64,000 nt of DNA. It comes from Callorhinchus milii. Lineage: Eukaryota. Below the pieces are notes generated by a model, which worked only from the letters and a program-made list of their open reading frames with translations, was not told the DNA's origin and did no database searches. Positions within the stretch are counted from its first letter, which is position 1. Every line of letters begins with the position of its first letter. A program made the translations under genes and the position numbers. The stretch covers positions 3,038,001-3,102,000 of the forward strand of contig NW_024704770.1 in NCBI RefSeq assembly GCF_018977255.1. The letters run 5' to 3'. Shown piece after piece: positions 22,539-47,422 of the stretch.

Positions 22539-22544
22539 TTTATT
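22539..22544 (-). promoter_or_regulatory. Candidate polyadenylation signal of keratin C
   Basis: AATAAA on -, ~600 nt past the stop. Confidence 0.45.
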
Positions 22545-23145
22545 GCACACAACAACGACCCAGGACATCCCAACTAATCCTGAAATCTCAGCCCAGCCCT
22601 CCGAACCACCGCACACCACCGGCACCACATGGTGCAGAAACCGCACACCCGGGATAGCAAATCCCATACAAGTACGGCGCATGCAATACAGAACAGTAAC
22701 GCGTAGCAACAGAAGTCTACGCTTAACCCAAAGCCATTCCCTTTCGCCCGCACGATCCTGCTCAGATCTGTGGCTGTTGTTGGAGACCATCAGCTGTGTT
22801 ACGGCTGTGTTTCTGTGGAGTGTTCCTCTGAGCTGTATTCCACAGTCTCAGTCTTGATGACCTGCAACAAAGGGACCCAGATTACCCACATGACCCAACT
22901 CCCATTTAGTCCCTGTGTGGGTCCTGTCTTGCCTCTACCTTGCTCGAGCCAGCCCCCTTTATAATAATACTTGATATAGCGCTTACATCAACTATTTTGT
23001 TTCGCCCGCAAAAACACACAGTCACTCCGCTTTACGGTATATTTGGTGAAGCCCTTTGAGACGTCTCAACCATGTGATGAGGCGCTATATCAAGTGGATT
23101 CCAGTCTCAGTTCAAAGCTTGAAGCTTAAACGCCCTCCCCCAGGC

Positions 23146-26100
23146 TCAGGCCTTCACCCCTGTGGTTTTGGGCTGTTGTTGCTGACGTAAAGCGCGAGAG
23201 GGAGAGCTCACCTGTACTCCAGTGACACCATCTCCGCTCAGATCCTGAGGATTCCCGATTGCGGCCTCAGATGTCATCTCACTCTGTGTCTCCAGCTTAG
23301 TCACTAACGTCTCAGTCTGTATGTCAGGCACAATGTCAAACTGTACCTCCAGCTTCTCTGTCTGTGTGTCAGGCAGAGTCACAGTCTGTGTGTCAAGCAG
23401 TGTCACAGTCTGTGTGTCGGGCAGTGTTACAGTCTGTGTGTCGGGCAGTGTCACAGTCTGTGTGTCGGGCAGTGTCACAGTCTGTGTGTCGGGCAGTGTC
23501 ACAGTCTGTGTGTCAGACAGAATCACAGTCTGTGTGTCGGGCAGTGTCACAGTCTGTGTGTCGGGCAGTGTCACAGTCTGTGTGTCAGACAGAATCACAG
23601 TCTGTGTGTCGGGCAGTGTCACAGTCTGTGTGTCGGGCAGTGTCACAGTCTGTGTGTCAGACAGAGTCACAGTCTGTGCGTCAGACAGAGTCACAGTCTG
23701 TGTGTCACGTGTCATGTCATACTGTGCCTCCATTCTCACAAGCTGTATGTCAGATGGCTTGTCAAACGGTACCTCCAGACTCTCCATCTGTATGTCAGGC
23801 AGAGTCAACACCCGGCTTACTATTGTCTCAACCTGTGTCTCCCTCTGTGTTTGACGGCTAATCTCTGGAGCTTGCTGTGTCTGCAGTGTCTCAGGCTGTG
23901 TCTCAAAGCAAGTCTGTATTGTCTCCAGTGTTTTAATTTGTGGCTCCAATTGAATGTGTGTGTGAGTCTCCTTAGTAGTCTTTGCCACTAGACTAGCTCC
24001 AGTTATACCCTCGTGGTAGGTCGGAATGTCAGGCTTTGTGTTAGATGTAGTCTTAGCGTCAGTCAGTGTCCAGTCTCCAGTCTCACTTCTCGCAAGAGGC
24101 CCTGTGACAATCACAGACTTAGATATAGGGTCAGCATCATCTGGATAAATAGTCTCAGTTGTGATCACTCTCCTGATCACAGTCTTAGTCTCAGTTGCTC
24201 TCTCAGCTTTAGTCTCAGCCTTGAGATCTGTCAATTCAATCAGAACAAATCAGAGTTGATTAACATCAGCATGCGTGTGTGCGTGTCTTGTACATATACA
24301 TACAACGACTTGCATTTACACAGCGCCCCTCACGTATGGTAGCGTCCCAGAGCGCAGAGCACGAAGCCGGGGGAGGGGAGGTGACCGTAGGCACTGGTCG
24401 ATTAGGAGGGTCTTCAGGCGCGACCTGAAAATGGGGAGGGAAGGGAGCAAGGGGCAAGGAAAGGAGGGAGGGATAGAGGAAGAGTGTTCCAGAGTTTCAG
24501 GCACTAGTGGCTGAAATCGCGGCCACCAATGGCGGAACGGAGGGCACGGGGGACATGCAGGAGGCCAGAGCGGGTCGAGCGGAGGCAGCGGGTTGTGGGT
24601 TTGCGGGGGGGGTTAAGCAGGTCGGAGAGGAAGGGAGCTGCCAGGGCGTATAGATACAATAACACACACACAGACACACACTCTCTTAGGATTGTTATTA
24701 TTATGATTATTATTATCTCACTGCCTTACATCCTTATCGCTCACCAACTCGTTCCATCCTTGCTAATGGCCCTGACCTTCCCAAATGGGAAGGAGAGGGG
24801 GGGAGCATGGCTGAGTATGATGAGGGGGGGAGGGCGGGCGGGGTTGGTGGGGTATGGGTGGGAGGGGGCAACACACCTACCTGAGCTAATGGTTGATCTC
24901 TTCTCACCACCCGAGGACTGCACCATCTTCCCGCTGAGAGTAGAACGGAAACAAAAGCCTCTCAGTTAGCATCCACAATCCCAACGTATAGCCTCAAGGG
25001 TGGGGGTGGGGGGGAAGTTTGGGGGCAGGGAGCAGGCAGGAGGCGGGGAGGGGAAGGGTGGGGGGGGGAAGAGCGCCAGTGTGCTCATTCACCCCAACAC
25101 CTTGCTGGTGTAAATTGGCTGCCCTCTCTCTGCCAACAAAAACAGTCAGAAACAAGGCAGCAGATCGAAAATACAACACTCCTCACGTCGGGAGGAGGTT
25201 CCGAGGCGCTGGACAGTCAGGGAATTCGCCCACAAAAACACCCAGTCGCCACACTTCACAGTAACCTCTGCGAAGCGCTCCAAGACGTCTCTAGGATCGA
25301 CGGGATGAGGCGCTGGATCAAATGCAAGGATTATTGTTATTTTTTAATTATTTGGGAGTTTCGGAAGGACCTTCGTCGCACGGCGGGTGGTGAGAATACG
25401 GAGCTTACAAGTGGGAAGCCTCGGGCGAGGACCCCCCAACGCTCACCGTAACGATCTGCGGGTTATCCCCGATTATATACCTGCCAGCTGTGTCCAGAAG
25501 GCCCCTGTAGGTGCTGATCTCGGCCTCCAGCTTGCTCTTGATGTGCAGCAGCTCCTGGTATTGCCGGCTCTGCTGTCCGGTGCCGTTCCTGAGCTCAATT
25601 AGCTCCCGCTCCAGCCCTGATAGCGCTCGCTGGTACCTGCTCAGCTCCTCCTTGTACCTCAGCTCTACCTTCAACAGCGAGTCAGCCAAGGACTGGTTCT
25701 GAAGACAGCGATGGTCAGGTTAGATATCGGCCCTCCCTTTTCGATCGTACCTTCAGTCATCTTCCCTCCTCCACCCTGCCCGCCATGCCTCTCCGAGCCC
25801 AACCCGCAACTCGGGTGCGGACCCCTCATTGCCCAGCACCCTTGGGGACATCCTCCCGACGTGAAAGGCTCTAGGTAAATGCAATTTGTTGTCGTGGTTG
25901 ACTGTTTTTGTTGGCAAACGTAGCAGGCAATCTGCACAAAGATCTGTCCCACAAATAGCCATGAAGTGAATAATAACAATAATAAAATAATAATAATAAT
26001 AATCCTGGCATTTGACCCAGCGCCTGATCACAGCTTCAAGACGTCTCAAAGCGCATCACAGCATATGCTGTAAAGTAAATCGACTGTATGTTTTGTGGGA

Positions 26101-29100
26101 GAAACGCAGCAGCCAATTGCCCCAAAAACAGTCGTGGATTGAGGGATCAATTTTTTTATTTATTATTTTTCTTCTGGGTAACCAGAGGCGCGTGTGTGTG
26201 TGCGCGTGTGTGTGCGCGTGTGTGTGTGGAGTAAGGAAACGTGCCCAATGTTTCGCCCTGACCTGACCCGCCCGGGATTCAAAACCAGGTCTCTCGCTTG
26301 TAAGGCGAGGGCTCTAACCACTGCAGGAATCCTCTGCAAAGGACGATACCTCCAGTACAGTGCAGCGCTACCCCCCCCCCACCCCACAGTCCTGAACTCC
26401 AGCATCAGTCTAGGGAGAGAGGGAACGGAATGGGCTACTTACGGCTCCAGCTGTGGAATCCAGCTCTGACCTGAGGGTCTGCACTTGCCTCTGGTACCCC
26501 ATCATCTCTGCCTTCATAGCCTCCATCCCCTCCCCTCCGTCTGAGGTCCTGTGCTCTTCCGTTTCCAGCTAGGAGAAACAACAATAAACCACTCGGGGTT
26601 TACACAGCGCCCCTCACTCAGGGTAGCGGCCCGGACGGTGACCGAGAATGACTCCCCCGAGCCAGGTTGGGGAGGGACGGGGGAGGTGACTGTGGGCACG
26701 ATCGAAGAGGAAGGTCTTCAGGCGTGACCTGAACCTGGGGGAATGAAGGAAGCAAGGAGGAAGGAAGGGGGGAAAGGCGGAGGGATAGAGAAAGAACATG
26801 CGAGACTCCGAGCTAAAACGTATCCTCGGTAACAAATACACTGAACACTTAACACAGAGCTATAGTCCGAGGCCCCTGGTTTGAGAGGAAGCCGGACAAG
26901 GTTCCCACCGTGGGATTCATTTTATATTGAGAAAGATAGAGATGTGTGGAATGACAAATCAGGGGATAAGGGGGAGGGATACAGAGCTTTATCACATCTT
27001 GGAGACGTCTCAAAGCCCCTCAGGGAATACACTGTAAAGTGAATTGACTGTATATTTTGTGGGCGAAATGCAGCAGCCAATTGCACACAGCAGCGTCCAA
27101 CAAACAGTGCTCTAACCATTGAGCTACAGGACTGCGCTATATCCTAAGCGGGGTGGGGGGTGGGAGTGGGTGGTGCTGTGTCTCGATCTCCTGTGGGCTT
27201 GTGGGGCCTGTAATTACCTGCTTCTGATACCAGGCCTCGGTCTGCTCCTGCTGCTTTCTGACCATGGCTTCATACTCTGCTCGAACGTCGCTGAGCATCT
27301 TGTTCAGGTCGGCAGCGGGAGCAGAGCTCACCCCGACGTGCACATTCAGGCCTTTCTGCTCGCGGAGCAGACTCAGCTTCTGTAACACAACGGCCGTTAG
27401 CGGGTTCACCTCAGACAACGTGCCTCCCGAATCCCACATCCCATCCATCCCCCCACCCACCCCCCCTCGCCTCCTTCAAGACCCTCCTCTTTGACCGCGC
27501 CTTCGGTCACCATCTACCCCCCTGCCCTCCACCCCCCTTCCTGATCCCAACCACCAGCTCAGGTGCGGATCCCTGACTGTCCAGGGCCTTGGGACGTCCT
27601 CCTGACGTGAAAGGCACTGTGTAAATGTCATGTGTTCTTATATAATGAACACCAAACCTCCACTCCCTCCCTCCCTTCCCCCCCCCACTCCCTCCCTCAC
27701 TTCCACTCCCTCCCTCCCTCCACCCTGTGTATATCGAAAAAATATATATTTTGGAAAAGAGAAGCGAAAATCTCCCAGTGTCCCAGCCAAAAATGGTCCA
27801 AATAAATTGGTCTTCAAACTGAGGTCGTGTCTGTCTGGTCAGGGGTGACGAGTCAGGGACACTAACCCACGTGAAGGCCACTAAACAAACACAAGTTGTT
27901 GTTGTTGTTAGATAGGAGGACGTGTACAGGTTGTGGTCTGGGCTACCCACCTCCTTCTCATGATCTTCCTTGAGCTGAGCAATGTCAGCCTCCAGGCTGC
28001 TGATCTCGCTCTCCATCTGAGTGGCCAAGTTCAGGTATTGTGTCTTGAGAGCGCGGAGAGACTCAATGTCAGCAGCGACCGAGAGACTCATCTCCACCTC
28101 ACATTGCGACCTCAGGGAAACACGATGAGAGTATGAGAATGTGCAATCCCCACCGCCCCATATCCCCACCAACATGTACGTAGAGTAAAGGTGGGTCGGT
28201 AACCGGGGCCCGTGGATTTAATATAAATTTAAGTTGTGGATCGCACTGCCCGGAAAGGGGGTAGAAACAGATTCAATAACTACTTTCAAAAGGGAATCAG
28301 ATAAGTAAGTATGTGGCTTCACTTGAGAACCACACCAACATAACCTGTACATAACACACACACACACACACACACACCTTGCCCCACACACAGATATCCC
28401 ACACACCTTCTTAGTTAGACTCGGTTCACTTACTTGATGCCGAAATTTTCAGCTCTGTGCTTTGAGCTGTCTAATTCCATAGCCAGGCGTGCATTCCCAC
28501 AGAAGAGATCTTCAATCTGCGTCAGTGCGATAGCCAGGGGAAGAGAAAGAGACAGGCATCACCTGGAGCCCTTTAAACCCCTCACTGAAGTGTCACCCAG
28601 CCTGCACCGTGAGCTCAAAGCCTTGGGGTTTGAACCCAGCACCTTCTGACCTAATGCAAAGGTAATCAACGCTCTATATAATCCTGTCTTAAAAAAATAA
28701 AACTAATAATAATAATAATAATAATTTGGTCCCTCAACCCACGACTGTTTCCGGGACGCTGCCGGGAGCAATTGGCTGCCGCGTTTCGTCCACAAAACAT
28801 ACAGTCGCTCCACTTTACAGTGTGTTCTGTGAAGCGTTTTGAGATGTCTCGAAGACGTGATAAGGCGCCGGGTCAAATGCAAAGGATTATTATTATCATT
28901 ATTATTATGACTGGAGCTGAGAGACCGTGAATGAACAGTGAATGTTTGTTCACGATGCTGCAGGGAATGTATTTTTAGACGTCGACAGCTAATCTGTCAA
29001 GTGCCCAGAGCTCTCCGCCCTTTTCAGTGCTGCAAGTAGCTAATACCTTGCAGCCAGAAGCATCTGACTCACTAACTATTATTGCTAAGTGGTGCCAGAA

Positions 29101-30779
29101 TCCTGAGATGGACTTCCCAGACCATCAGCGAAACAATGACTCCCGTTTATATCGCACCCTTCACGTGGAGTAGGGTCCCGGATCGCTTTGACCCAGATAT
29201 AAAACGTCAGGGTCTTGTTGTTGGATTAAAATATCTGTACACTTCAGGAGCTCTGTGAGACTGGAGACATAGACACCAAATCTGTCCTGAGGAGCCACCC
29301 TTTAAATCCCAAATTCCCGTCCCCCTGTTACTGAGCCCTGAACCTTCTATCACGCCCAGAGTCTTGTCTTCTCTTATTAGCCGTTATTATGGCCTCACAA
29401 CAATAAAGGAAAAATATTTCCAAATCTGATCAAGATCTTACGATATTCACAGGTTTGAAATGCCCGTCACACAGTGAATTAATTACGTTGTAGTGTACTC
29501 ACTGTTCTTGCAACCTAATCCATGTTAGCATTTGCACCCTTCTTCAAGGCAAATCTCAAGACCCTTCTCTTTGATCGTGCCTTCGGCCACCCTCCTACCC
29601 CCACCCTCCACCCCTCCCTACCCCCAGCTCGGGTCCAAATCCCTGACTGTCCGTCCAGCACCTTGGGACGTCCTCCCGACGTGAAAGGCGCTGTGTAAAT
29701 GTCTTTTTGTATCGTATAGGGTTAATGGGCATTGTGCACCTGACGGTATGTAATCTGATTCTGTTCCCAACGCCCTGAGGGCTGAGCTAACAACTCCAAC
29801 CACCGAGAGATCATTTCATATTTTCCTCACGACCCCACAACAGCGGCAACTGGCATTTATACAGCGGGCTTCACACGGGGTAATGTCTGGGAGCCCCAGG
29901 GTGTGAGGTGTGGCCAGAACAACTGCTCCCAGTCTCCGACCAACTTTCGGGGCAAAGCTATGGGCAGGTCAAGAGTACCTGCGCCACGTGGAGCCCTGTA
30001 GCTCAGTGGTTAGAGCACTCGCCTCGCAAGCCAGAGGACCCAGGTTCAAATCCCGCGCGGGCAGGGCGAAAGTTGGGTAAGTTTCCTTCCTCCACACATC
30101 TCTGTTTACCCAACAGTGGAACCCGGTTGTTAGTTGATTGGCAGATCACTTTTTGCGTGATACATTTGTCACTCAATCCAGGACTGTTTGTGGGACGCTG
30201 CTGTGCGCAATTGGCTGCTGCGTCTCGCCCACAAAATATACAGTCAATTTGCTTGACAGTATACTCTGTGAAGCGCTTTGAGACGTCTCGAAGACATGAT
30301 AAGGCGCTGTATCAAATGCAAGAACTATTATCTGCCCCAGAACCACAGCACCTGTACCTGCTTCAGCAGAGCCTTGACTCTCGTATCGTACAAACTCCAG
30401 TCAAATCCCCCCAGGGTCTTGGGTTTGGAGAATTCCTTGATCTTTGCCGCCAGTGTCAGGTTGGACGATTCCAGAGATTTGACCTGCGACAGGTAGGAGG
30501 CCAAGCGGTTGTTCAGGTTCTGCATGGCTTCCTTCTCGTTGCTCAGGTTTCCGCTACCACCCCCATCACTGTTCCCACCGAGCTTCCTGCCCCCAGTCCT
30601 GTCCCTGAAGAGAACTTAATGGCCATCCTCCCTCCCACAGCTAGTCCGATCCCTCCAGGGGCAGCTTGCCCCAATCTGTAGCTCCTCAACGCAACGCCAT
30701 AGTTTCTCTTGTTGTAGCCTCCACCCAGGGAAAGGTTTGACAGCGAGGCTGATGTTTGCTTGGAGGAATACAGGGTCAT
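23146..30779 (-). CDS. Type I keratin C with long Thr-rich repeat tail (~768 aa if the exon-1 frameshift is corrected). Exons 30358-30779, 28434-28516, 27951-28110, 27218-27379, 26443-26568, 25481-25698, 24881-24933, 23146-24227
   Basis: [17 protein letters not shown] and [16 protein letters not shown]; exons 83/160/162/126/218 nt. The 53-nt exon 7 ends in phase 1 and joins the 1082-nt open terminal exon (G|AT CTC AAG). Exon 1 is 1 nt short near 30560, so a pseudogene is not excluded. Confidence 0.82.
23350..23710 (-). repeat. Coding 24-bp tandem repeat, ~15 x (P/S)DTQTVTL
   Basis: Unit CACAGTCTGTGTGTCGGGCAGTGT on +; the frame is preserved throughout. Confidence 0.95.
25970..26322 (-). mobile_element. 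tRNA-derived SINE copy
   Basis: Matches the family consensus seen in the window. Confidence 0.75.
29990..30330 (+). mobile_element. tRNA-derived SINE, full length
   Basis: A/B boxes and conserved tail; lies antisense in keratin C intron 1. Confidence 0.85.
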
Positions 30780-30854
30780 GGCTGTTTCAGTGTTTGTCGC
30801 CTCCTCTTACCTACGGCTTGGCTGCCAGTACTGAGACGGCCACATGCAGCCATA

Positions 30855-30860
30855 TTTATA
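30855..30860 (-). promoter_or_regulatory. TATA box of keratin C
   Basis: TATAAA on -, ~75 nt upstream of the ATG. Confidence 0.7.
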
Positions 30861-32719
30861 CTGAAGACATCTACCAACACATGCCGCCTCCCCTCCACCC
30901 CCCCCCACACACACATACCCACCCTGTCTTAATTGGCTGGCTGGCAGGCAAGGCAGGTTCCTCGCCACTCCCAATTCAGACTGGCTTCGATGATTCCTGT
31001 GTGTGCAGTCTTCGTTGCAGAGATTTAGTGAAGTGAACACAATTATTAGACGTATAGGAAACATTGATTCACCCCCACACACATCACAGGTCTCCACAGC
31101 CGTTGAATTAACTGCATCCTCAAACCGTAGCCTCTGCATCGGGTACAGTAACTGGACCCTTCCAGGCTCCTGAAGGGCTTCACTGTTAATCGCTGTGAAG
31201 TGTAGTGACTTGCACCAGCAGTAAGTCCCTTCACAGACCTGACCTAGCCATGGCAACAACAACTTGTATTTATATACCCCTTTCACGCTGGACGGGGTCT
31301 CGGAGCGCTTGACATGAGTGGAGCCCGATGCCAAGCCAGGAGGTGGTGAGGGGGGCGGGGGGGGGAAGGTGACCGTAAGCACAGTCGAAGAAGAAGGTCT
31401 GAAAACGTGGAGAGAGAGCGAGGGGGCGGCAAGTGGTGTAGAGTGAGCGACAGAGCATATTGGCCAATTGACCAATTTTATCTGGGACTAGGACAAACCC
31501 TTGTCTTTCCAACAGGGCCCTGCCATCTTTAACATCCAGATCATCCTTCAGCCCTTGTTAAACAGTCACAGTTTCTAGACCCTCCTCTGAGCTCAGGCGC
31601 CAACTCCAAGGCTGGAACGCACGGCCCGAAAGGGTGGTGTAAACTGATTTTAATAACAACTTTCAAAAGGGAATCGGAGAGGTATTCGAAGAAGAAGAAC
31701 TTGCAGGGATGTGGGGGAAAGAGCGCGAGAGTGGGACTGGTTGGGGAGCTCTTCCAAAGAGCTACCGGCACAGGCACGATGGGCCGAATGGCCTCCTTCT
31801 GTGCCGGAACAATCTATGGTTCTACATGTGTTTGTTTGGTTCCTGTTGTCTCAGATGCACTTTGGCTCCAATGCCAAAGGCTAACAGGGCTGTCAAGGAC
31901 CGAATGAACCCGAGTAAATAAGGAAATTATTAAATATCACAGGCATTAGGCTTATCTCAATACATTCAACCGAGACATCCTCTCTCTCTCTCTCTCTCTC
32001 TGTGTGCCGAGGGGCTGATCTCAGCCCCGCTCTGTGCTGAATGGTTGGTCTCCGCTGAGATAGCAAATGGGTGAGGGAGGGGGTCTCGCTCCTGATCACT
32101 GAGCAGCAGGCTTGAGGCTGGATTCAAGCACCTAGCTGTGTGCCCTGGGGAACTTGGCTCACACCAGCCTACAAACACCCAACAACAACTGAGACACCAT
32201 CAGCAGCTGAAACGCCTGGAGACAAATCAGCAGCTTAGCTCCTGGAAACACCCTGTTTGCTTTTCTCACACTCAACCAACTCCCAGCCTCTCCCACCGAG
32301 AATTTGACCAGGGTGACCACACTGATGCTAGTCAGCGGTTTTAGGGGCACCGTTTGGCTTCTTAACAGCCACCGACCACTCTTTTAAAGCAGCTCGATGT
32401 TGGATCAGAGGCAAAAAGCGAATGCATTCCCCGTAAAGGTCCACCCAGTCCGAGCTTATAAACAGAGCCATGCCAAGCGCTCCAAGGCTTACTCTGTGTA
32501 TGTGAGCCTCTGAAGCATGTTATGTAAGGTACAAAGCTCTGCATTGGCCAAACCCTTCCATCAGGTTCTGAAATAGCAGCAAATTAATTAATGGAGATTC
32601 TTCCCAGAGCAATGGGAGCCCCAGGCACAGGTTGGGGAGGTTTTGAGCTGTCAGCACAAAGAGCATCTGTGCTGCTCATTCCCCCATTGCCATCCGAGTT
32701 ACAGAAGGCAAGAAATGCT

Positions 32720-35861: not shown

Positions 35862-38191
35862 TCACACGTGTTTGATGAGCTCCAGGAAAAATTCCGACTT
35901 GAGGAATCTGGGAAAGGAATCGTTCTCCATCAGGCTGCGGATCCGCTCCTGGGCCAGCTGGAAGCAGAAGGCGCTCGGCTCCTCCAGGTTCCTGGTAACC
36001 TTCTCCCTGGTCGTCGAGTCCAGGTTAACCTGGCACAGAGAGAGAGAGAGAGAGACGTGCGCAAACAACAGAGGGCTTTACACTGACGATCCAGAACACC
36101 CCGAGTCCTGCAACACTCTCACTCAGGTACAGCAATGCACGCTACACTTTTATAGCACTTTCACGTCACGGGGGGGGGGGGGGGGGGAGAGAAAGCACGA
36201 TACACCTGGGTACGCGTGCACACACGCGTGCACACTCACGCACTTGCACACAATGCAAGGCACCGAGACACAACACAATGTGAGAAAGCGACACTTATGC
36301 ACACACAGTGAGCGACAGGTAGAGACACACACATACACACACATGAGGGAGAGAGAGACACACAGAGTGAGTGAGAGAGAGACACACAGTGAGAGAGAGG
36401 GACACACACACAGTGAGAGATAGAGAGACAAACACAGTGAGAGATAGAGAGACACACACACAGTCAGAGATAATAATCCCATAATAATCCTTGCATTTGA
36501 TACACAGCCTTATCACGTCTTCGAGATGTCTCAAAGCGCTTCACAGGATACACTAAAGTGTAGTGACTGTAGTTTGTGGGTGATTGTGGGTGAGAGACTG
36601 TGTGTGTCTCTCTCCCTCATGTGTGTGTATTTCTTACACACACAGAGTAAGAGTCAGACGGAGACACACACACACCTCCCCCACCCCTCCTCGTACACTC
36701 TCCACCTTCCCTGGCTATTCGGTGATGCCCCCCCCCCACCTCTTTAGGAGCCTGGACAGTGATGAACTCCCGGTAAATCCTCTGGGCTTTGTTGGCGAGT
36801 TCCGCGCTGGTCCTTGTGCTGCGGTAATCCTCACAGGCCAGCCAGAACTCCAGGTTCTCCTCACTGAACTCCGAGCACAGGAAGGCACGGAACGTGGTCA
36901 CTCCACCTGGAAACAGAGAGTCAGTCAATGGGCCAATCCCGGTCCCAATGACCCATCATGTCCACCTCCCAGCCCTCAACCTCCAACTCCCACATCCCAG
37001 CCCTCAACCCCCACATCCCACCCTCCACATCCCAGCTCCCAGGGGAGTGGGACTGACTCTTCCAAACAGCTGGCACAGGCTCGATGGGCCGAATGGCCTC
37101 CTTCCGTGCTGTAATAATCTATGATTCTAAGCCTCATGTCAGGGGCTTTGGGCTCACAGTTCGGCTGTCGTGAGGGAAGGCTAGGCTCACGCGTGTCCAT
37201 GCTGTGTGATCTCACACTCACTTTTGTTGGACAGAAGCTTGTCAAAGACCTGACCTCCTCCTAGAGCTTCCTCTGTGCTGGGCCTGTGGAGACAAGGAGA
37301 GAAAGAATACTGAGAGTGTGTCTGTGCTGGTGCTCCCTCTACCCCCACCCATTGGAGCTCTCTCCTCTAACCCCATTCCCTGCTCGCTCTCTCCCCCCCC
37401 TCATCGTGTCTGCGCTGGTGACTGACCTGCTCGTCCAGGGGAGTTTTTGCTGTTTGACGGCCACACTCTCAGGTTCACTGATGGCTTTGGGTTTGTGCAG
37501 CAGAGATCCCAGCTGCACCCTCATCTCCTTGGCCCTGCCACAGACAGACAAGAAACATAACAACCTGCATTTATACATTGTCTGTCACCCGGGGTAGAGA
37601 CATGGAGCGCTTCACAGTGACGGAGTCTGACAACCAGCCGTCAGAGGCGTCTTACCGTCTGCAGATCAGCCTCTAACTAGCAATAGTTACTATTAACTGG
37701 GTAAGAAATGCTGGGGGTGAGGATGACACATAATAATCATCGTTGGATTTGACCCAGAGCCTCATCACATCTTCGAGACGCCTCAAAGCGCTTCACAGGA
37801 TACACTGTAAAGTGTAGTGACTGTGTGTTTTGTGGGCAAAACGCGGCAGCCAATTGTGCCCAGCAGCATCTCCACGGACAGCCGTGGGTTGATAAGAACC
37901 AATCGCAAGGCACAAAACAAAGTGACTACGCTTTATGGCGTATCCCGCGAAGCGCTTTGAGACGCCTCGAAGACGTGATCAGCCGCTGTGTCAAACGCAA
38001 GGATCATTACCATCAGCTCGTCCTTGAGCAGCTCTCACACCTACACGATGAACCGCGCCCCCACCTTCACACACCAACGCCCGTCCTAGTGGTGGTGGTG
38101 GGGTGGGTGTGTTAGCTGTGTGCCGGGCTTCGCTGGGCGCGAAATACCTCTCGATGCAGGTGGAAGGCAGCGCTGCCAGTCCTCGACACAT
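35862..38191 (-). CDS. Regulator of G-protein signalling, R4 class (RGS5/RGS16-like), 182 aa. Exons 38148-38191, 37427-37534, 37222-37283, 36740-36906, 35862-36029
   Basis: N-terminus [18 protein letters not shown]; RGS box [17 protein letters not shown]...APKEVNLD...[13 protein letters not shown]; five coding exons as in R4 genes; the 549-nt CDS is open. Confidence 0.93.

Positions 38192-41259: not shown

Positions 41260-47422
<6,163 letters not shown>

Follow-up and report, generated by a model that had tools for sequence, protein, structure and literature searches.

A type I keratin gene with nine exons

The window analysed here, a 64,000-nucleotide stretch of the Callorhinchus milii genome (contig NW_024704770.1, positions 3,038,001 to 3,102,000), carries on its minus strand a genuine type I keratin gene of nine exons, which is transcribed and ends in a long, Thr-rich tail of about 377 amino acids (aa), and there is little room for doubt that both the gene and this tail are real. 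The locus is already annotated as XP_007905353, with the tail exon 100% identical to XP_007905353.2 over 188 residues; that model is named "keratin, type I cytoskeletal 18", and the older XP_007905353.1 (598 aa) is named keratin 19-like. However, the whole tail and the ninth exon are present in no public model that we found.

The assignment to the type I keratins, which an earlier note on this DNA had proposed, is upheld by two lines of evidence. The Pfam Filament profile matches residues 81-388 of XP_007905353.1 over profile positions 1-309 of 313, with 221.5 bits against a cut-off of 40, and the 19 non-self relatives with an E of 1e-20 or lower comprise 15 proteins named as type I keratins and 4 without a name, with no type II keratin among them. 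Exons were mapped with the public protein together with GT-AG borders and were handled singly, whereas whole-protein searches used the public models XP_007905353.1/.2; taken one by one, exon 1, exon 4 (2.8e-9) and exon 6 (2.5e-16) each match the Filament profile. In a search of the PDB, coil 2B scores higher against K10 (57.4 bits) and K14 (47.7) than against K5 (42.2) and K1 (35.0), and the rod as a whole is 32-37% identical to its database relatives.

With type I keratins of the K18/K19/K20 kind, this protein shares a complete intermediate filament (IF) rod that starts with the helix initiation motif LNNRLASYL, exon sizes close to those of the human genes, and a location beside two other type I keratin genes. 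Judged by eye only, the short tail motifs K(T)VIRRV and VIKTETVE resemble the ..KIKTVV.EVVDGKVVSS.. of K20, K12 and Xenopus relatives. The differences concern the end of the rod, where the termination motif is not TYRRLLEGE and is devoid of the usual R and EGE, the presence of nine exons and, above all, the tail, which is rich in Thr, Gln, Asp and Glu rather than in Gly and Ser. The tails of related type I keratins are indeed usually short, as had been stated earlier, spanning 16-60 aa in the 14 relatives that were measured (four more have no ruler motif).

The coding part of exon 1 (30358..30779, minus strand, as are all the features of this gene) begins with the ATG at 30779 and encodes the head, coil 1A and the start of coil 1B, with a donor after ..AAGCAG. 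Exons 2 (83 nt, 28434..28516), 3 (160 nt, 27951..28110), 4 (162 nt, 27218..27379), 5 (126 nt, 26443..26568) and 6 (218 nt, 25481..25698), the last of which contains the end of the rod, all have GT-AG borders and reproduce the type I exon-intron pattern, the corresponding human rod exons measuring 83/157/162/126/221 nt. The tail is encoded by exon 7 (53 nt, 24881..24933), which is included in XP_007905353.1/.2, by exon 8 (1016 nt with 338 full codons, 23212..24227), which forms the body of the tail, and by exon 9, the coding part of which, together with its stop codon, occupies 22799..22861. Between the last two exons lies intron 8 (350 nt, 22862..23211), with the borders cag/GTGAGC and ttgcag/GTC.

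Evidence of splicing comes from the mapping of contigs over 22600-28599 in four runs, namely, three small transcript-like ones, of which two belong to one study (X1 and X2) and the third to another (X3), and the genome-sized DNA run X8; the contig depth figures obtained in this way are a poor measure of abundance. The GT..AG joints 28108/28432 (cut +2; in X1), 27379/27951 (X1 and X2), 26568/27218 (X1) and 25698/26443 (X1, X2 and X3) are confined to the small runs; none occurs in X8, the contigs of which run unbroken across the exon borders. Exon 8 is represented in record 1 of X1, records 7 and 8 of X2, and records 13, 15 and 16 of X3. The proposed junctions 25481/24933 and 24881/24227, which link the rod to the tail, are GT-AG and in frame and are present in the NCBI models as well as in transcript contigs of both studies. 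That transcripts carry the exon 6-7-8 junctions follows from three observations: in record 16 of X3 (454 nt), exons 5 and 6 are followed by 53 unlisted letters, after which come 88 nt from the start of exon 8; record 8 of X2 (677 nt) comprises 599 nt of exon 8 and 78 more letters; and the bin depths fit, being equal to the contig depth multiplied by 53/200 for exon 7 in X2 and X3 and by 25/200 for the end of exon 6 in X2.

The same contigs alter the 3' end of the gene. All three transcript-like runs, X1, X2 and X3, contain the joint 22859/23210, which skips 350 nt (cut +2), whereas the DNA-sized X8 does not; therefore, exon 8 extends from 24227 to 23212 and is followed by exon 9 from 22861 on. 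Exon 8 ends in ..GGAGTACAG at 23212, with gtgagc next in the intron, and exon 9 starts with GTCATC at 22861, directly after ttgttgcag. The true C-terminus is VIKTETVEYSSEEHSTETQP, encoded by exon 9 and followed by the TAA at 22801-22799. Thus, the 1082-nt terminal exon assumed in the earlier note gives way to an exon 8 of 1016 nt that is spliced to a ninth exon, and the stop assigned to 23148-23146, together with the last 21 residues before it, falls within intron 8. The 3' untranslated region (22539..22798) would extend to an AATAAA, read in the sequence at 22544-22539; the contigs reach 22663 in X3 and 22711 in X2.

None of the public models contains this C-terminus. XP_007905353.1 and XP_007905353.2 both end within the octad array described below, the UniProt/Ensembl entry A0A4W3GCL1 is without the tail, and exon 9 is missing from all three. 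Instead, A0A4W3GCL1 reads past the exon 6 donor into a short tail (25405-25480), a stretch with a contig depth figure of 24.7 compared to 1807.5 for exon 6 in X1, that is, about 1% by this poor measure.

The tail and its octad array

The tail of about 377 aa is assembled from two bases of exon 6 and from 53, 1016 and 60 nt of the three following exons, with exon 7 contributing 17 aa, exon 8 338 aa and exon 9 20 aa. A unique, acidic part of exon 8 that is rich in Thr and Gln makes up most of this length. Thr accounts for 23.1% of the exon 8 residues, Gln for 9.8%, Asp for 8.6% and Glu for 6.8%, and the net charge is -31. The earlier description of a Thr-rich tail of about 380 aa, with a long exon rich in T/E/Q/D, was accurate on both counts, and this tail is transcribed and spliced to the rod.

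Within exon 8, Tandem Repeats Finder (TRF) reports a single array at 23360-23706, with a period of 24 nt, 14.5 copies, 91% matches and 0% indels. Read as codons, the array occupies 23347..23706 and consists of 14 full units (23706-23371), each encoding an octad of the form DTQTV(T/I)L(S/P/L), and a partial unit (23370-23347). The previous count of about 15 DTQTVTLP units stands for these 14, the fifteenth being only a partial DTQTEKLE; the accompanying observation that the long exon contains no frame-breaking indel agrees with the 0% indels of the array and with the minus-strand frame, which is open over 24249..23149. Allowing for up to 3 mismatches, there are 11 occurrences of the 24-nt unit, always within the array, against 0 expected from 100 shuffles. 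Half of the units (7 of 14) are identical at the DNA level, and units 3-5 and 6-8 form identical 72-nt super-units.

On either side of the array lies a copy of a module of about 35 aa, one upstream (23704..23805) and one downstream (23266..23379). The copies align locally with a score of 76, which was reached by none of 1000 shuffles (the highest being 42), and are 39% identical in BLASTP. The octad corresponds to the first eight residues of this module, and the array lies between module copies, which points to recent slippage inside an older duplication. The 24-nt unit, taken from the start of an older duplicated module, has thus been amplified recently and in frame to 14 near-identical octads. 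The idea that the whole tail consists of degenerate octads was considered and rejected: the lag-8 autocorrelation in the three parts outside the array yields z of -0.2, 0.5 and 0.8, and the repeats are, therefore, confined to the array and its two flanking modules.

Searches for similar tails retrieved little apart from the gene itself. Among 8000 scored candidates, the tail exon recovered only the C. milii model, and residues 306-513 of XP_007905353.2 recovered only themselves among 921 candidates of 282-898 aa. A HMMER pass through 1.84 billion representatives produced 515 hits; among the best 150 of these, only XP_007905353.2 covers the non-repeat half of the tail, and the other 149 align with the section of the query that contains the repeats, for the most part around residues 170-300. 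These 149 are unrelated proteins with other octads, such as NGQTLTLS, EVPRMQTV or PDVQTIQL, and none of them contains an IF rod (phmmer, E 10). Within the window, tblastn with pieces of the tail detected nothing beyond the gene's own tail exons (best E 0.008, on the opposite strand), and neither open frames nor tblastn of tail pieces allowed a tail to be assigned to either of the two adjacent keratin genes; a search of the ESM Atlas gave no usable match. The tail searches covered no genomes of cartilaginous fishes (sharks, rays, other chimaeras), and therefore orthologs are possible there, and the absence of the tail elsewhere is limited to the searched collections. Given this scope, the long tail is probably a lineage-specific oddity.

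The searchable literature is equally silent. The accession XP_007905353 appears in none of the searchable papers, and a literature search for a Thr-rich or long keratin tail returned nothing relevant. The accessible texts of two fish keratin catalogues, those of Kimura and Nikaido (bioRxiv 10.1101/2020.05.06.063123) and Schaffeld 2007 (PMC1896152), describe no such tail; the supplementary tables of both, which possibly name the gene, lie outside these texts. Hagfish thread keratins were dropped as a lead, the accessible part of the eLife paper on them containing nothing on tails or threonine.

Two other observations came out of the database searches. Similar arrays, made up of LPD.QT.R-type octads, are present in five unrelated predicted proteins, among them one of the snail Physella acuta, and could be convergent coding minisatellites or derive from a shared simple DNA repeat. 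A 785-aa protein of Sander lucioperca (keratin 13-like) was considered as a long-tailed relative and rejected, given that in the public model one complete type I keratin rod is joined head to tail to another, probably as the result of a merged gene prediction.

Possible roles of the tail

Keratin tails are normally short, and long projecting tails are a hallmark of neurofilaments, nestin-type proteins and filensin. The explanation that we favour, on balance and without great assurance, is that the gene encodes a genuine keratin with an expanded, acidic side-arm tail; the side-arm mechanism taken by itself is a more tentative proposition. Under this scenario, the rod would co-assemble with a type II partner into keratin filaments of the ordinary kind, and the tail, which presumably cannot pack into the filament core and so would project from it, would form a long, negatively charged, extended side-arm of the kind seen in neurofilament M/H and filensin. 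Such a side-arm would set the spacing, hydration or bundling of the filaments; the many Thr and Gln residues could serve as sites for modification, and the length of the array would probably be free to vary via replication slippage.

Neurofilament tails act as side-arms, and the likeness to neurofilament M/H and to filensin (BFSP1) consists in a long C-terminal extension, with tandem repeats, after an IF rod. For filensin, a tail of 438 aa is reported that contains 6.5 tandem repeats similar to the ones in NF-M and NF-H (PMC2119801). The differences are substantial as well. The keratin belongs to another IF class, with a type I rather than a type IV gene structure; its translated tail contains no KSP motif and instead carries Thr/Gln octads, and, unlike neurofilament-type tails, it is acidic without Lys-rich blocks. 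By analogy, this keratin may work like a neurofilament side-arm, yet it is not a member of the neurofilament family.

Several observations weigh against this explanation, and some of them are the very ones on which its rivals draw. In the window, the head and the rod are one base out of frame, with the break at about 30563-30559: the ATG at 30779 opens a head frame that runs into a stop at 30546, and the frame of the rod becomes open only after 30615, whereas residues 1-72 of XP_007905353.1 map with 100% identity to 30779-30564, and residue 73 onward needs one extra base. If real, the break would leave a headless, assembly-poor protein, and the locus would be a dead or dying gene, either a transcribed pseudogene or a null allele; the newer XP_007905353.2, which is headless and begins at an internal Met, is in line with the window. 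Nevertheless, we consider such decay most improbable: the older XP_007905353.1 and A0A4W3GCL1 both read in frame through ..GTVMAGGSGNL.., the other 626 codons (exons 2-9) are open and the introns are spliced, and the contig depth of the exons in X1 is about 100 times that of the introns, poor a measure as this is. Furthermore, only one X1 contig reaches over the beginning of exon 8 (24104-24496, depth 888.5); it is unspliced, and no contig of X1 covers exon 7. A retained intron, an internal start or the fragmentation of contigs could explain this. The array is not bridged by any contig, whether from RNA or from DNA, and the count of 14.5 copies is, therefore, that of this assembly alone. Finally, six of the eight variants in exon 8 change a residue, three of three outside the array and three of five inside it, and those outside fit weak constraint. 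The same variants would suit a neutral expansion, that is, a coding minisatellite grown by slippage in a length-tolerant part of a keratin, the tail having no function of its own and needing only not to disturb assembly. Also compatible with neutrality are the near-identical units, including the identical super-units, the lack of a relative with such a tail in the searched collections, and the presence of similar PD.QT-type octad arrays in unrelated proteins. However, the 173 codons upstream and 53 codons downstream of the array are likewise open and of unique sequence, the array is devoid of indels, and intron 8 and exon 9 have been preserved, with each of the three RNA-like runs making use of them; on these grounds, we regard a purely neutral origin as unlikely, although it deserves serious consideration.

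The structure predicted for the tail bears on the remaining alternatives. In single-sequence AlphaFold2 predictions, which are weak evidence, the whole of exon 8 (338 aa) has a mean predicted local distance difference test score (pLDDT) of 32.5 and a predicted template modelling score (pTM) of 0.19, whereas the array with its flanks (180 aa) has a mean pLDDT of 40.0, with 155 of the 180 residues below 50, and a pTM of 0.33; no residue reaches a pLDDT of 70 in either prediction. Still, short low-confidence strands recur every 8 residues through the array, the mean Chou-Fasman beta propensity of the array is 1.10, and its charge-hydropathy value is borderline, with an H of 0.470 that falls slightly to the ordered side of the 0.455 boundary. 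These features sit uneasily with an extended side-arm and would fit ordered beta structure, in which Thr alternating with Q, V or L and a Pro-Asp turn form a beta-sheet, a beta-solenoid or a cross-beta zipper, within one tail or between tails, that would bundle filaments. A weak match to PF22178, the octapeptide beta-helix of T4 gp5 (E 5e-5), points the same way, and yet its 23.8 bits fall below the cut-off of 30.9; gp5 shares the 8-residue period with the keratin tail, and differs in being a trimer with Gly at the corners, in contrast to a tail with no confident predicted fold. In the PDB, the tail matches leucine-rich repeat proteins, which were rejected as relatives because only the periodicity is common to them and the tail, and, most likely, both these matches and that to PF22178 reflect periodicity only. 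With one Asp per unit, the strands would, in addition, be subject to charge repulsion. Altogether, an ordered beta structure appears rather improbable, and the earlier thought of a beta-solenoid or ice-binding fold gains no support from predictions that contain no confident solenoid.

The same note had also raised the idea of a multivalent scaffold for LC8/DYNLL, in which TQT anchors would recruit LC8 dimers that cross-link the tails. There are 14 TQT anchors in exon 8, in a low-confidence, possibly disordered region, and in this respect, many anchors in a row without a confident fold, the tail is similar to the multivalent LC8 clients ASCIZ/ATMIN and Nup159. Clustered weak motifs can bind via avidity, as Jespersen et al. 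2019 (PMC6607443) state for ASCIZ and BSN, and avidity could rescue weak TQT sites here. According to that study, however, LC8 prefers P, D or E at position +2, where hydrophobic residues are ill-accommodated and Val is very rare; position -3 favours large side chains, often K or R, with internal prolines being unfavourable; and a hydrophobic residue larger than Ala at -4 is found in no known LC8 binder. In the keratin tail, +2 is Val and -4 is Leu in 13 of the 14 TQT sites each, and -3 is Pro in 9 (in agreement with the remark, made before, on Pro at this position in many units), Ser in 3, Leu in 1 and Arg in 1. Unlike the known clients, then, the octads retain only the anchor and break the flanking preferences in 13 of 14 sites, and with a period equal to the 8-residue length of the motif, the sites would abut without linkers. 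With such unfavourable flanks and no linkers, canonical LC8 binding is unlikely, and we hold the whole scaffold model to be very improbable. A combination of these themes, in which the tail is a functional, filament-anchored strand array with 14 in-register TQTV octads per chain, which would either zip together the tails of adjacent filaments by cross-beta pairing or, poor flanks notwithstanding, bind a strand-binding hub such as LC8 via avidity, seems improbable too, if somewhat less so; should it be true, holocephalans would possess their own means of keratin bundling or cross-linking without keratin-associated proteins.

Should the favoured explanation, a keratin with an acidic side-arm, prove correct, it would mean that a side-arm was invented independently on a keratin, and this in a basal lineage of jawed vertebrates. 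The finding alone neither answers nor opens a major question. Because the public models are incomplete, keratin catalogues built on them miss the long tail, and the tail is a defined starting point for the study of how tail length and charge tune keratin networks.

Neighbouring genes and minor features

Two other type I keratin genes are present in the window, at 112-578 on the plus strand and at 13101-8033 on the minus strand. Upstream of the long-tailed keratin, and also on the minus strand, are an exon with an RGS domain (Pfam 6e-17) and beta-tubulin-like exons, at 36620-36955 and 43255-44010. On human 19p13.3, TUBB4A and DENND1C are neighbours in a region that is not known to contain keratins, which implies that this keratin group may lie outside the two classical keratin clusters.

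Two candidate promoter elements, both read by eye on the minus strand, precede the gene: a TATAAATA box at 30853..30860, about 75 nt upstream of the start codon, and a CCAAT-like element near 30935. Among the introns, very high summed depths in X8 (up to 785,980) mark the stretches 27000-27199, 27400-27799, 25200-25399 and 26000-26199, which are high-copy interspersed repeats, with translations that recur across the window. In intron 7, at 24274, one X1 contig and one X8 contig share a GT insertion in a (GT)n run. A common variant, 24218 G>A, which replaces Ala with Val at the third residue of exon 8, is present in all four runs.

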